Shown here piece by piece: positions 1,197 to 21,710 of a stretch of 23,255 bases of DNA. The stretch's first letter is position 1. Every line of letters starts with the position of its first letter. A model generated the notes under the pieces. The model worked only from the letters and a program-made list of their open reading frames with translations. It was not told the origin of the DNA and did no database searches. Source of the stretch: Schizochytrium sp. TIO01 (Eukaryota > Protista > Bigyra: Labyrinthulomycetes); contig SMSO01000016.1 of assembly GCA_004764695.1 (NCBI GenBank), forward strand, positions 48,494 through 71,748, given 5' to 3'. A program made the translations under genes and the position numbers.

Positions 1197-1247
1197 AGTG
1201 GTACTCGTAGTATTATATAAATAGGGGTTCAATTCCCTTTGCCACTT
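1197..1247 (+). ncRNA. tRNA-like minihelix element 1 (acceptor stem + T arm, no anticodon arm); putative processing signal
   Basis: AGTGGTA(1197-1203) pairs with TGCCACT(1240-1246). T arm AGGGG-TTCAATT-CCCTT at 1223-1239. The connector is only 19 nt. Confidence 0.6.
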
Positions 1248-6761: not shown

Positions 6762-7292
6762 ATGTATTTTACAGTGGTTATAAAAGATGGATTCTCTTTC
6801 TCTGAAAATCAATCTTTTTATATTATTACAGATTCATTTAATAATAAAAGCTTTGCGTTTAAAAAAGAGTTCTTTTTTCAGGTATTTAACGAAACATCGT
6901 CTATCCAATTTGTGTGTTCGAAACGTTCATTTTTGACTAAATTTAAGTCCCTACAATCTAAAATTATCTCTTTCATATCTAATAAAGTTTTTTCTGAAAA
7001 ATTTTCTATAGTAGGGGTAGGTTACAAATGTTCTCTAATTTCTCAAAATACTTTCCAAATTAACATTGGGCTTAGTCACCCTGTTTTGTTTACTATTCCT
7101 AAAGGTATTGTTGTGGAAATTAGTAAAGACCAAACTAAAGCTTTTTTCTATTCTATAAATTATAGTCTTCTAAAAGAATTCGTTTCTTTTATTTGCCAAC
7201 AAAAACAAACTGATCCTTATAAAGGTAAGGGTTGTTTTATAATAAGCAAAGTTTCTGTGTTGCCTCTAAAAGAAGGTAAACGTTCTAAATTA
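6762..7292 (+). CDS. rpl6: ribosomal protein L6 (176 aa, TTA stop)
   Basis: IVGVGYK, IGLSHPV and DPYKGKG motifs. C-terminus LKEGKRSK is followed by TTA (7290-7292). Confidence 0.92.
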
Positions 7293-7301
7293 TTTATTAT
7301 T

Positions 7302-7772
7302 ATGAAATCTGTTAAAATAATCTTTTTTTCTTCTATTTTGTCAAAGTATGGTTTGCTTTATTCTAAGCAAACTCAAGCGTTTATGAAAGTTTTCTACTTT
7401 ATTACCAATCTGCGTAAAAGTCAAGTTTCTTTTTGTATTGTAGGGAATTCAAAATCAATAGCACGCTTCTTTTATATGTTTAAAAATGAATCCGTTACTT
7501 TTTTGAGTAAATGGGTTCCTGGTACTCTATCCAATTCTCAAAAAAATTCTCGATCTTTTTATCCTGATATTTTGATCGTTATGGGCTTTAAAAAAAATCT
7601 TGTCGCTATTTTGGAAGCAAATAAAAAGGGGATTCCTGTAATCTGTTTTTCTAACGAAAGTTCTCTAAAGAAATATTCTTTTTATTTGCCTTACGTTATT
7701 TTTTGTGATCCTCGTCAAATTAAAGCTCTTTGGTTTTCTATATTTCTTTTTTTTACATCTTTTAAAAAATAA
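7302..7772 (+). CDS. rps2: ribosomal protein S2, shortened (156 aa)
   Basis: KWVPGTLSN, PDILIV and AILEANKKGIPVI are S2 motifs. ATG lies 9 nt after the rpl6 TTA, in the same frame. Confidence 0.85.
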   Translation: MKSVKIIFFSSILSKYGLLYSKQTQAFMKVFYFITNLRKSQVSFCIVGNSKSIARFFYMFKNESVTFLSKWVPGTLSNSQKNSRSFYPDILIVMGFKKNLVAILEANKKGIPVICFSNESSLKKYSFYLPYVIFCDPRQIKALWFSIFLFFTSFKK

Positions 7773-7773
7773 A

Positions 7774-8271
7774 ATGCTTAAGTTTAAACAACTAAAAAAA
7801 CTAAAAATAAATCCTATCTATTCTCAAAAATTTGTTGCTCATTGTTGTAAGCCGCAAAATACTTGGGTTTCCATTTTGAAACAAGCTCAAAAAAATAGGG
7901 TTTCTTCATTTGTACGTTTGCACGCAATTAAAAAAGATGTTTTTAATCAGCGCAAACAAGTTAAGTACACTTATGGTTCATCTTCTCCAAGTCCACTTAA
8001 GCTTGATTTTCTTATTTGGAGTTCTCGTTTCTATCCTTCACTATTGGCAGCTCGTCATGCTGTTTGTTCTAGTAAAGTAGTCGTAAATGGAATTGTTCAA
8101 AAAAATCCAAATTTCATTTTGTCAGCGGGAGATCTTGTTCATATTCAGGGAAATATCACTATTAATGGTTCATTTTTTACTACCGTAAATCAAAATGTAG
8201 CTTTGCAAGCTATTATTCCCCAAAATTTGGAAATCAGTTTTAGTACACGCAGTTTTGTAGTTTGTTACTAA
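7774..8271 (+). CDS. rps4: ribosomal protein S4 (divergent, 165 aa)
   Basis: S4 RNA-binding domain LKLDFLIW...ARHAV...VVVNG...PNFILSAGDLV, then IPQNLEISF. ATG 1 nt after the rps2 stop. Confidence 0.85.
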   Translation: MLKFKQLKKLKINPIYSQKFVAHCCKPQNTWVSILKQAQKNRVSSFVRLHAIKKDVFNQRKQVKYTYGSSSPSPLKLDFLIWSSRFYPSLLAARHAVCSSKVVVNGIVQKNPNFILSAGDLVHIQGNITINGSFFTTVNQNVALQAIIPQNLEISFSTRSFVVCY

Positions 8272-8281
8272 CTACGTGTTT

Positions 8282-8327
8282 ACGGGGGTTTCGGTTAATT
8301 AAAAAGGTTCAAGTCCTTTTCCTCGTT
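8282..8327 (+). ncRNA. tRNA-like minihelix element 2 (acceptor stem + T arm, no anticodon arm); putative processing signal
   Basis: ACGGGGG(8282-8288) pairs with TCCTCGT(8320-8326). T arm AAAGG-TTCAAGT-CCTTT at 8303-8319. The 14-nt connector contains a D-loop-like GG. Confidence 0.6.
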
Positions 8328-8339
8328 TAAATATATTTT

Positions 8340-8714
8340 ATGATAAATTTTCAAAGGCTTATCTCTTCTTTGAATATAGGAATTCAACAAAATGCAAGTG
8401 TTGTGCAAGTTCCTAATTCTAAACAAAATCTTCAATTTATTTCTTTGCTTTATAAAGAAGGTTTTATTAAAGCTTTTCAATTTTCTGGTCGTAATATTAA
8501 AGTTTTTCTTTTCAAAAATAATAGTCTTTTGAAAGGTAAAAAATTTATTCTTTTTTCACACAATAAAAAAGATGTTTACGTATCTACTAAAAATTTGTGG
8601 GCGCATAGTGGACTTTGTTCGTTGTTTATCTCTACTTCAAAAGGTTCATTGGTTCATTATTCAAAAAGTTTTTCAAATCTAAAAGGAGGTAAATTGCTTG
8701 CCGCCACTATCTAA
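8340..8714 (+). CDS. rps8: ribosomal protein S8
   Basis: VPNSK...LLYKEGFI, ISTSKG and GGKLL motifs typical of S8. Confidence 0.88.
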   Translation: MINFQRLISSLNIGIQQNASVVQVPNSKQNLQFISLLYKEGFIKAFQFSGRNIKVFLFKNNSLLKGKKFILFSHNKKDVYVSTKNLWAHSGLCSLFISTSKGSLVHYSKSFSNLKGGKLLAATI

Positions 8715-10347: not shown

Positions 10348-10623
10348 ATGATTCGTGGTTATTTTCAACTTTATAGTTTTAAATCTATACCTTCTTCTGT
10401 TAAACAAAAAAAGGTATTCACTTTTAACAAATCTCATCATGTAAATAAAAAATCTAAGACATCCGCAAGTCTTGTTTTTTATAAAACTAAAGCATCTTCA
10501 CTTCATACATTTAGTTCGTGGTCAGATATAAAAAATTTTTATATTTATCAAGCACTTTCTATTTTTTCTAAAAAAATTACTTTTAGTTTTCGTATGAAAG
10601 TGGTTGCTTGCCCTTATAGTTTA
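10348..10623 (+). CDS. rps10: ribosomal protein S10 (divergent, 91 aa); stop lies inside trnE
   Basis: FTFNKSHHVNKKSK resembles the S10 motif TVLRSPHVNKKSR. First stop is TTA at 10621-10623. Confidence 0.7.
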
Positions 10624-12353: not shown

Positions 12354-13106
12354 ATGCTTTTTACTTTGTTTGGTTATTGTGATGCTGCTACTCCATGGCA
12401 ATTCGGATTTCAAGACCCTGCTACTCCTATCGCAGAAGGTATTATTCGATTTCATCACGATTTGATGTTTATTATGGTTTTTGTTGTAGTTTTTGTTTTT
12501 TGGATGCTTACTCGTATCGTAATGCATTTCAACGTAAAAACCAACCCTAACCCTTCAGCTGTAGTTCACGGAACTACTATTGAAATTATTTGGACTTTGA
12601 TTCCTGCAGTTCTTCTTATGATTATTGCAGTTCCTTCTTTTGCTCTTCTATACTCTGTAGATGAAGTAGTAGATCCCTCTGTTACTTTGAAAGTTATTGG
12701 GCATCAATGGTATTGGTCATACGAATACTCTGACTATGAAAATGAAGATGGAGAAAATCTAGTTTTCGATTCTTACATGTTGCCTGATGATGAATTGTCT
12801 TTGGGAGATTTGCGAATGTTGGAAGTAGATAACCGTGTAGTATTGCCTGTTGATACTCATGTTCGTCTTATTGTAACCAGTGCTGATGTGCTACATTCTT
12901 GGACTGTACCGTCTTTTGGAGTTAAAATGGATGCTTGCCCTGGTCGTCTTAACGAAGCTAGTTTGTTTATTCAACGTCCTGGTGTTTTTTATGGTCAATG
13001 TAGTGAAATTTGTGGTGTAAACCATGGATTTATGCCTATCGCAGTAGAAGCTTTGAAACTAGAAGATTACGTTTCTTGGGTAGCTGCTAAACTAGAAGAC
13101 GCTTTA
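12354..13106 (+). CDS. cox2: cytochrome c oxidase subunit 2 (250 aa, TTA stop)
   Basis: [20 protein letters not shown], CuA motif [15 protein letters not shown]. First ATG after trnN; TTA at 13104-13106. Confidence 0.98.
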
Positions 13107-13116
13107 TTTTTAGTAT

Positions 13117-13251
13117 ATGTATCTTAGCTTTTTTCAAATTTGTTTTGTTGTACTTATCGCTTTTTTGCTTTTTGGTAATTCTAATAATCTTATTAAAACA
13201 TTTAAAAAGAATATTAAAAATATTCAAAAAGAATTTCAAAAAAAAGAATTA
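13117..13251 (+). CDS. tatA: twin-arginine translocase subunit TatA-like (44 aa), absent from the ORF track
   Basis: [44 protein letters not shown]: polar Q7, short TM helix, FG hinge, amphipathic basic helix. Ends in TTA just before trnW. Confidence 0.75.
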
Positions 13252-13260
13252 CAACATTTC

Positions 13261-14883: not shown

Positions 14884-16359
14884 ATGTCATTTCTTTATAT
14901 TTCTTACCTTATTGGTATTCCCGCTTTTATCGGTAGTTTTCTTTTGATTTTTCCACTATCAAATAAAGTATCAAAGCAACTTGCTTTGGGAGCATCACTT
15001 ATTAGTTTTTATATTTCTATTCTAATGTGGGTGTTTTTTGATAATAACAACGGTGCGTTTCAATTCGTAGAAACTTATAATTGGTTTAGTTCATCCAATC
15101 TAGCTATTACCTTTGGAGTCGATGGAATTTCTTTGTTCTTTATTCTATTGACAGCTTTTCTAATTCCTATTTGTCTTCTATCTTCTTGGTCGTCTGTAAA
15201 AACAAAAAATCATCTTTTTACTGATCGTCATTATTTTGCTCTTTTTCTTTTGATAGAAAGTATGATTTTTATCGTATTTACTTCACTAGATTTGATCGTT
15301 TTTTATACTTTTTTTGAAGCCGTTTTGATGCCTATGTTTTTTATTATCGGTGTTTGGGGTTCCCGTGAACGTAAAATTCGTGCATCTTATCTATTTTTTA
15401 TGTACACTCTTTTTGGTTCTCTATTTATATTGCTTGCTATCGTATTCATCTATATAGAATGCGGTAGTACTCATTATTTGATGCTTTTGGAAACTAGTTT
15501 TAGTCCTGAACGTCAAAAAATTTTGTGGCTAGCTTTCTTTTTCTCATTCGCTGTTAAAGTGCCTATGTTGCCTGTACATTTGTGGTTGCCTGAAGCGCAC
15601 GTAGAAGCACCTACTGCGGGTTCTGTTCTACTAGCTGGAGTGCTTTTGAAATTGGGTACTTACGGTATAATCCGTTATTCTTTGCCATTGTTTCCATTGG
15701 CTAGTTTTTATTTTCGTCCTTTTGTATTTACTTTGGCATCTTTGGCAGTTGTTTATTCTTCAATAACCGCTATTCGTCAAAGTGATATAAAACGTGTGAT
15801 TGCTTACGCTTCAGTTGCTCACATAAATATAACTGTAATTGGCTTGTTTAGTTTTAATTTGGTAGGTGTTGAAGGTGCTATTTTTCAAATGCTATCACAC
15901 GGTGTTGTTTCAGGAGCTTTGTTTTTGTGTGTAGGTGTATTGTATGATCGTCATCATAGCCGATTGATTAAATATTATGGCGGACTTGTGCATACTATGC
16001 CTCTTTTTGTAATTCTATTTCTTGTATTTACTATAGCAAATATTGCATTGCCAGGTACTTCCAGTTTTGTTGGAGAGTTCCTTATCTTGTTTGGTACTTT
16101 TTATGCTAATTCATTCGTAGCTTTTGTAGCCGCGACTAGTATGATTTTGGGAAGTGCGTATTCTCTATGGCTTTTTAATCGTCTGTGTTACGGTAACCTC
16201 AAATTGCAATACATTCAAGTTTCTTTTGATATTACAAAACAAGAATTTTGGGTGTTTATGCCATTGTTGTTTCTTACTATCTTTGGGGGTATCTTTCCCG
16301 GTATTTTTTTGGATCCTCTACATACTAGCTGTAGCGTTTTGCTTTCAGTTTTTTATTTA
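14884..16359 (+). CDS. nad4: NADH dehydrogenase subunit 4 (TTA stop, followed by TAA)
   Basis: VKVPMLPVHLWLPEAHVEAPTAGS, LLKLGTYG, LPGTSSFVGE. Confidence 0.98.
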
Positions 16360-18268: not shown

Positions 18269-18341
18269 GGGCGTGTAGCTTAGTGGTTAAAGCTTTCGGT
18301 TGATAATCGAAAGACCAAAGGTTCAAATCCTTTTACGCCTA
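18269..18341 (+). tRNA. trnI: tRNA-Ile(GAU)
   Basis: GGGCGTG/TACGCCT acceptor; TTCGG-TTGATAA-TCGAA anticodon arm. Confidence 0.94.
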
Positions 18342-21347: not shown

Positions 21348-21710
21348 ATGTCCACTCTTTTGCAATCTATAAAACGTAAAAAAAGTAGTTTCATTAAAAA
21401 AGAAACTGCTTTGAAAAAAGCACCCCAAGCAAGTGGTGTTTGTTTGAAAGTTTTTACTATGTCTCCAAAAAAGCCTAACTCTGCTGTACGTAAAGTAGCC
21501 AAAGTGCTTTTGAGTAATAAAAACATTATTTCTGCGTATATTCCAGGCGAAGGACATAACCTTCAAGAACATTCTAGCGTATTGGTTCGTGGAGGTCGTG
21601 TTAAGGATCTACCTGGAGTTCGTTATAAAATTGTACGTGGGGCTAAAGATACTGCCGGTGTTATAAAACGAAAAACATCGCGTTCTAAATATGGAGCCCC
21701 TAAACAATTA
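21348..21710 (+). CDS. rps12: ribosomal protein S12 (120 aa, TTA stop)
   Basis: [43 protein letters not shown], then TTA (21708-21710) 1 nt before trnD. Confidence 0.98.

Follow-up and report, generated by a model that had tools for sequence, protein, structure and literature searches.

Two short tRNA-like elements in the mitochondrial genome of Schizochytrium sp. TIO01, each corresponding to the top half of a tRNA, probably serve as mRNA processing signals between genes. Element A (1197-1247) lies at the rpl16-nad7 junction and element B (8282-8327) at the rps4-rps8 junction, and both are acceptor/T-arm minihelices that appear to be derived from tRNA genes. The comparisons presented below support their assignment to the tRNA-like processing signals of the t-element kind, which are already known, in a new lineage; our literature search turned up no report of such elements in labyrinthulomycete mitochondrial DNA (mtDNA). 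Coordinates refer to the window, the whole stretch of 23,255 nucleotides that was analyzed (G000:C15:48494-71748), unless another locus is named. The window belongs to a 41,148-bp mitochondrial unit, which the assembly contains as a concatemer and once more on contig C37. All genes in the window are encoded on the plus strand, as are both elements.

The first-pass annotation described element A as two stacked helices, an acceptor stem of 7 bp and a T stem of 5 bp, with a T loop and a 19-nt linker, and exactly this arrangement is seen in the sequence and in its minimum free energy (MFE) fold. The acceptor 5' strand AGTGGTA (1197-1203) pairs at all seven positions with 1240-1246 of the 3' strand TGCCACT, one of the seven pairs being U.G, and the 3' strand is followed by a discriminator base, T1247 (1240-1247 together). 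In the T arm (1223-1239), AGGGG (1223-1227) pairs with CCCTT (1235-1239), including one G.U, and encloses the 7-nt loop TTCAATT (1228-1234), which follows the canonical T54-T55-C56-R57-A58 pattern. The A+T-rich linker (1204-1222) takes the place of the D and anticodon arms and is unpaired in the MFE fold. Element A is thus not a canonical decoding tRNA, that is, a cloverleaf with an anticodon stem-loop. ARAGORN called 17 tRNAs in the window, none of them at element A, and the Rfam tRNA model gave no match to it even at E values up to 10. Element B has the same architecture, with the acceptor strands ACGGGGG and TCCTCGT, a 14-nt linker, and the T loop TTCAAGT. A third element type is represented by ten further copies in the repeat region of this genome.

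The RNAfold minimum of element A is the minihelix itself, at -11.1 kcal/mol, with an energy z-score against shuffles of only -1.4, which is not significant by itself; across the elements, folding z-scores range from an unremarkable -1.2 to -2.4. This is the one observation that favors regarding element A as a chance stem-loop within an A+T-rich spacer. A scan for stand-alone minihelices with 7/7 acceptor pairs, 5/5 T-stem pairs, and a linker of 5 to 34 nt recovered exactly two in 27.5 kb of unique mtDNA, elements A and B, against a mean of 0.09 in dinucleotide-shuffled sequences, of which 7/2000 reached two. Exact matches to the T-loop consensus GGTTCRANYCC were found in the called tRNAs and at just two other sites, 1226-1236 and 8306-8316. 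Together with the conservation of the element at the corresponding junction of a diverged genome, these results speak against a chance origin so strongly that we consider it effectively refuted.

The genomic setting of the elements depends on correct gene ends. In-frame TTA codons are confined to the 3' ends of the coding genes across the window (for example, 1169-1171, 2452-2454, and 21708-21710), which fits a role of TTA as a stop codon in these genes. This agrees with the Thraustochytrium mitochondrial code, table 23, and "TTA" stops have been reported in Schizochytrium sp. TIO1101 (PMC7799850). With TTA read as a stop, rpl16 (734-1171; 145 codons; Pfam Ribosomal_L16, E 2e-27) ends at 1171, and element A therefore begins 25 nt after it, which corrects the first-pass annotation in this respect. 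This 25-nt trailer (1172-1196) corresponds to a gap of 19 nt of unconserved sequence in the relative described below. On the other side of the element, nad7 (1261-2454; 397 codons; homologues with PF00346) likewise ends with a TTA stop. Element B sits 10 nt after rps4 (7774-8271), the end of which is also set by a TTA stop, and 12 nt before rps8 (8340-8714). Open reading frames (ORFs) called under table 11 erroneously extend into the tRNA genes that follow, trnG in the case of nad7 and trnD in that of rps12, and a 336-codon "rps2" ORF splits into two parts, 6762-7292 and 7302-7772, when TTA is taken as a stop.

Both elements are spaced from the following gene as a tRNA would be. Twelve real tRNAs precede a coding sequence (CDS) with leaders of 10 to 21 nt (median about 12.5), and the corresponding distances are 13 nt for element A, in the form of an A+T-rich nad7 leader (1248-1260), and 12 nt for element B; the tRNA-like leader spacing first proposed from the position of element A thus held up. 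CDS-CDS junctions lacking a minihelix do not exceed 31 nt in this genome or 17 nt in the relative; longer junctions are confined to the two with a minihelix, which measure 89 and 68 nt here. Position, strand, leader length, and compactness of the genome all fit a role as tRNA-like punctuation. For annotation, the elements explain the only long CDS-CDS spacers in the two thraustochytrid mitogenomes compared. Outside the CDS-CDS junctions, the cox2-trnW spacer, with 154 nt here (13107-13260) and 157 nt in the relative (15056-15212), is by far the longest one lacking a recognized feature in this otherwise compact genome. A 91-codon ORF following trnF, with TTA as a stop, overlaps trnE by 15 nt here (10609-10623) and by 14 nt in the relative (12559-12572), so that the ORF mRNA or the tRNA would not be obtainable intact from one precursor molecule.

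The orthologue comparison covers one diverged relative, PAKY01000056.1 (29,465 nt; G001:C56, also L087, L168, and L169), reached via a nad7 product with 87% identity (MAY74467.1). This thraustochytrid mitochondrial contig has been mis-binned in the metagenome-assembled genome (MAG) "Phycisphaerae bacterium SAT56," a contamination of a public MAG, and its nad7 was deposited as a bacterial NADH-quinone oxidoreductase subunit D. It carries the same 21 tRNAs in a colinear gene order from which trnC alone has moved. Amino acid identity between the two genomes is 87% for nad7, 58% for rpl16, and 50% for rps8, whereas third codon positions of nad7 are 51% identical and its four-fold sites 42%, which is close to saturation; the tRNA genes are 74 to 97% identical. 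At the rpl16-nad7 and rps4-rps8 junctions, where ARAGORN called no full tRNA in the relative, we found elements A' (L087:3056-3113) and B' (L087:10210-10257). The first-pass annotation had conceded that relatives might carry a complete tRNA gene here and that the element might be a decaying, nonconserved pseudogene; the one diverged relative carries the same minihelix instead. At the relative's contig end after trnY, a full-length tRNA-like sequence (G001:C56:10-88) has a bulged acceptor stem and the noncanonical T loop TTCGCAA and was not called by ARAGORN; in the window genome, trnC followed by the first repeat-region minihelix occupies this place.

Elements A and A' are identical at 30/32 structured nucleotides, compared to an average of 89% at the same positions of the 21 real tRNAs. 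The acceptor 5' strand and the discriminator are the same in both, and the two differences leave pairing intact: in the T arm, 16/17 nt are identical and the single change turns G.U into A-U, and in the acceptor 3' strand an A-to-G change turns U-A into U.G. The linkers, in contrast, have lengths of 19 and 26 nt and unrelated, unalignable sequences, and the leader following A' is 23 nt long, slightly beyond the tRNA range. The comparison of B with B' is different in kind. Their T arms are nearly identical, and the acceptor stem of B', TGCGAGA/TCTCGTA, differs from that of B at 10/14 nt, yet all seven pairs are formed in both species and the 7 + 5 stacked pairs remain. A register shift of one base could account for part of this difference. 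The acceptor helix of element B evolves more rapidly than its counterpart in any tRNA of these genomes and stays paired nevertheless, a behavior to be expected of a purely structural signal that would be free of synthetase identity. In total, all 12 pairs of both elements are retained in both genomes, which points to selection on the shape of the elements rather than on their sequence. In the relative, stems are thus conserved or compensated, and linkers are free to vary. In predicted folds of A' and B', an alternative hairpin using the T-stem 5' strand beats the minihelix by 3.4 and 1.5 kcal/mol, respectively.

A covariance model, R1, built from A and A', recovered B', B, and the repeat-region elements C1 and C2, in addition to elements in two other contigs. 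Among six thraustochytrid elements, 97.2% of the cells of the pairing table are paired, compared to 72% in shuffles, of which 0/500 reached the observed value, and to 53 to 65% with slid partners; double changes occur at 8/12 pairs. Since a structural scan supplied these six elements and the structure itself guided their alignment, this table is biased toward structure, and the independent evidence consists of the two orthologous comparisons. Further nad7 homologues share 88% (P0004) and 76 to 79% (P0006 to P0010) identity, and the element may also be present in further relatives, to judge from protein read-throughs in P0005 and P0008, DNA read back from protein being ambiguous.

Both elements bear traces of tRNA genes of the same genome. 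The T arm of element A (1223-1239, compared with trnK at L004:3572-3588), extended by the following three bases, matches trnK(UUU) at 19/19 nt. The T stem of element B equals that of trnI(GAU) (8303-8319 compared with 18315-18331), and at 11/13 bases its linker agrees with the 5' strand and loop of the anticodon arm of trnI, with the anticodon mutated. An 8-mer common to this linker and trnI occurs five times in the window, so that by itself it says little and gains weight only in combination with the T-stem match. From these matches, elements A and B are probably old paralogues of the existing trnK and trnI genes, respectively, rather than remnants of tRNAs that are missing here (Arg, Thr, or Leu(UAA)). 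A search for the parent tRNA by top-half similarity among 325 tRNAs gave no clear winner, and tRNAs upstream of nad7 in other AT-rich mtDNAs revealed no common ancestor state. The 7-mer AGTGGTA, which forms the acceptor 5' strand of element A, recurs in the D loop of trnK (L004:3545-3551) and of many other tRNAs, and for this reason R1 also matches D loops of tRNA-Gly elsewhere. It is tempting to speculate that this strand was recruited from the D loop of a trnK copy, but identity between trnK and the remainder of the linker is only about 37%.

At T-stem position 50, element and parent tRNA agree within each genome and differ between the genomes: element A and trnK both have G here and A in the relative, and element B and trnI both have A here and G in the relative. 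This suggests short-patch gene conversion between an element and its parent tRNA gene. Conservation of the T arm therefore speaks less strongly for selection, whereas the argument from the acceptor stem is unaffected. It also lends weight to the view that the elements are nonfunctional relics of duplicated trnK-like and trnI-like genes, decaying slowly while their T arms are converted by the parent, a scenario for which the trnK and trnI matches described above speak as well. Conversion cannot maintain the acceptor stems, however, since these are not common to the parent tRNAs, and the acceptor stems are fully paired in both species, in element B despite the ten changed bases. In addition, neutral sites between the two genomes are saturated, no other CDS-CDS spacer in this genome exceeds 31 nt, and two separate elements have been reduced to the same half-tRNA rather than to random fragments. 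A decaying pseudogene should have eroding stems and lack conservation in relatives, whereas the stems of A and B are preserved in both genomes. Taken together, we regard the relic scenario as unlikely.

If the elements are excised, the same enzymes would also free an RNA of roughly 51 nt, and this RNA rather than the mRNA ends might be what is selected, for example, as a CCA-tailed regulator, a decoy for tRNA-binding enzymes, or a chargeable minihelix, with mRNA processing as a side effect. Accumulation of plant t-element RNAs, which carry nonencoded C residues (PMC1920247), sets a precedent, and the best, albeit subthreshold, Rfam likeness of element A is to mascRNA, an excised tRNA-like RNA. 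The free drift of the B acceptor sequence and the absence of constraint on length and sequence of the linkers argue against a sequence-specific function in trans, and we judge a small-RNA function of this kind to be rather improbable. Very little speaks for a still-decoding, extremely reduced tRNA, for instance, for the missing Arg, Thr, or Leu-UAA tRNAs, even though both genomes have just 21 tRNA genes and none for Arg or Thr. Every element lacks an anticodon stem, the linker varies in length and sequence between orthologues, the B linker resembles a trnI anticodon arm with a mutated anticodon, and the known armless mitochondrial tRNAs show the opposite pattern, dispensing with the D or T arm but not with the anticodon arm (PMC2797822); a decoding role is therefore highly improbable.

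In the reading that we favor, elements A and B act as processing signals. They would be transcribed within a single-strand polycistronic precursor and recognized by the tRNA end-processing enzymes. RNase P, probably a nuclear-encoded PRORP, would cut 5' of 1197 and thereby end the rps3-rpl16 message, and RNase Z would cut after the discriminator at 1247, yielding an nad7 mRNA with a short A+T-rich leader as after real tRNAs. The roughly 51-nt RNA released between these cuts might be CCA tailed. We infer both cleavages and the release of this RNA from sequence features. Acceptor/T-arm minihelices can serve as substrates of RNase P, tRNase Z, and the CCA-adding enzyme (PMC3714273), and PRORP has been reported as a replacement of RNA-based RNase P in stramenopiles (PMC10941002). 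An Rfam search of the mtDNA detected no RNase P RNA. In the nuclear genome, a single PRORP-domain match (G000:C31:5112035-5112700; 80.9 bits) and a single match to long-form RNase Z (G000:C13:2685681-2685854; 39.9 bits) exceed their family cutoffs. The products of these nuclear genes are candidate enzymes for the elements. The proposal that element A is a punctuation mark separating the rpl16 cistron from nad7 thus gains support from its position and spacing, its conservation in the relative, and the presence of nuclear genes for the putative enzymes.

Beyond the two thraustochytrid genomes, other mitochondrial and bacterial loci, about 1.3 Mb in all, yielded only a handful of matches in a strict minihelix scan, of which two look real. 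Both reside in unrelated environmental mtDNA contigs: the first, in an A+T-rich contig, is separated by 3 nt from the upstream nad7 and by 14 nt from the downstream cox2 (L072:1481-1528), and the second lies 27 nt after trnS(UGA) (L077:5499-5548). On 93 other loci, R1 matched mostly real tRNAs via the D loop or T arm and produced no convincing stand-alone elements beyond those in L072 and L077, and a scan of viral contigs gave one, unrelated match. Our metagenome scan for nad7 yielded 80 loci, all at most 75% identical, and only L077 among them has rpl16 upstream of nad7. It carries a complete trnW between these genes and was considered as a relative with a full tRNA at the junction; with an rpl16 only 29% identical, it is too distant to count as such.

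A more far-reaching scenario, which we put forward as speculative and doubtful as a whole, is that protist mitochondria keep dedicated half-tRNA punctuation marks that arose from duplicated tRNA genes (trnK-like and trnI-like). Their T arms would be kept uniform by gene conversion, their acceptor stems would be rebuilt by compensatory change or register shift such that the 12-bp stack is kept, and they would be excised as possibly CCA-tailed RNAs that accumulate and might have a function of their own. Should this be true, the L072 and L077 elements would make half-tRNA marks widespread beyond thraustochytrids. The elements of Schizochytrium are of interest in several further ways. They represent a natural model of a minimal substrate, predicted to be recognized by PRORP and RNase Z in vivo. 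They show a route by which a tRNA gene copy may be reduced to its processing half, and they predict exact mRNA ends in a cultivable, industrially used organism.

Several known systems invite comparison. The mascRNA and MEN-beta tRNA-like elements have a tRNA-like fold without a working anticodon and are cut by RNase P and RNase Z, which makes the end of a longer RNA. Their family, mascRNA-menRNA (RF01684), gave the best Rfam match of element A, with 19.3 bits, far below the cutoff of 42.5 bits, and an E value of 0.23, so the resemblance is one of shape only. This family is nuclear and found in vertebrates, whereas element A is mitochondrial and below the gathering threshold.

In animal mitochondria, excision of tRNAs from a polycistronic precursor frees the flanking mRNAs (reviewed in PMC3790967). 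Similarly, tRNA-shaped units are placed between genes in the genome analyzed here, and real tRNAs precede 12 of its genes at the short leader distances given above. Unlike in the animal system, the punctuating unit at the two junctions is not a tRNA and cannot decode. The armless mitochondrial tRNAs of nematodes and mites, about 42 to 55 nt in length, still decode (PMC2797822; bioRxiv 10.64898/2026.06.12.731814). Element A shares with them its very short length, its derivation from a tRNA, and its location in mtDNA, but it is built the other way around: it keeps the T arm and is devoid of the anticodon arm, which the armless tRNAs retain while losing the D or T arm.

The closest counterparts are the mitochondrial t-elements of plants. 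In wheat, Arabidopsis, and Brassica, a GGTTCRANYCC screen detected these elements at mapped mRNA ends, and cleavage at their borders by RNase Z and RNase P (PRORP) sets the 5' and 3' termini of mRNAs (PMC1920247). The plant elements reside in large, loosely packed genomes, and several of them have mapped ends, whereas A and B are minimal acceptor/T-arm halves with predicted ends, located at fixed junctions of a compact stramenopile mtDNA with tRNA-like leader spacing and without sequence homology to the plant elements. Like the plant t-elements, A and B carry GGTTCRANYCC outside tRNA genes and adjoin protein genes, and element A combines an exact match to this motif with an acceptor-containing MFE fold on the plus strand between rpl16 and nad7. 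Processing at tRNA-like elements that are not tRNAs has been documented mainly for land plants, and the same solution now appears to be used in a compact stramenopile mitochondrial genome.
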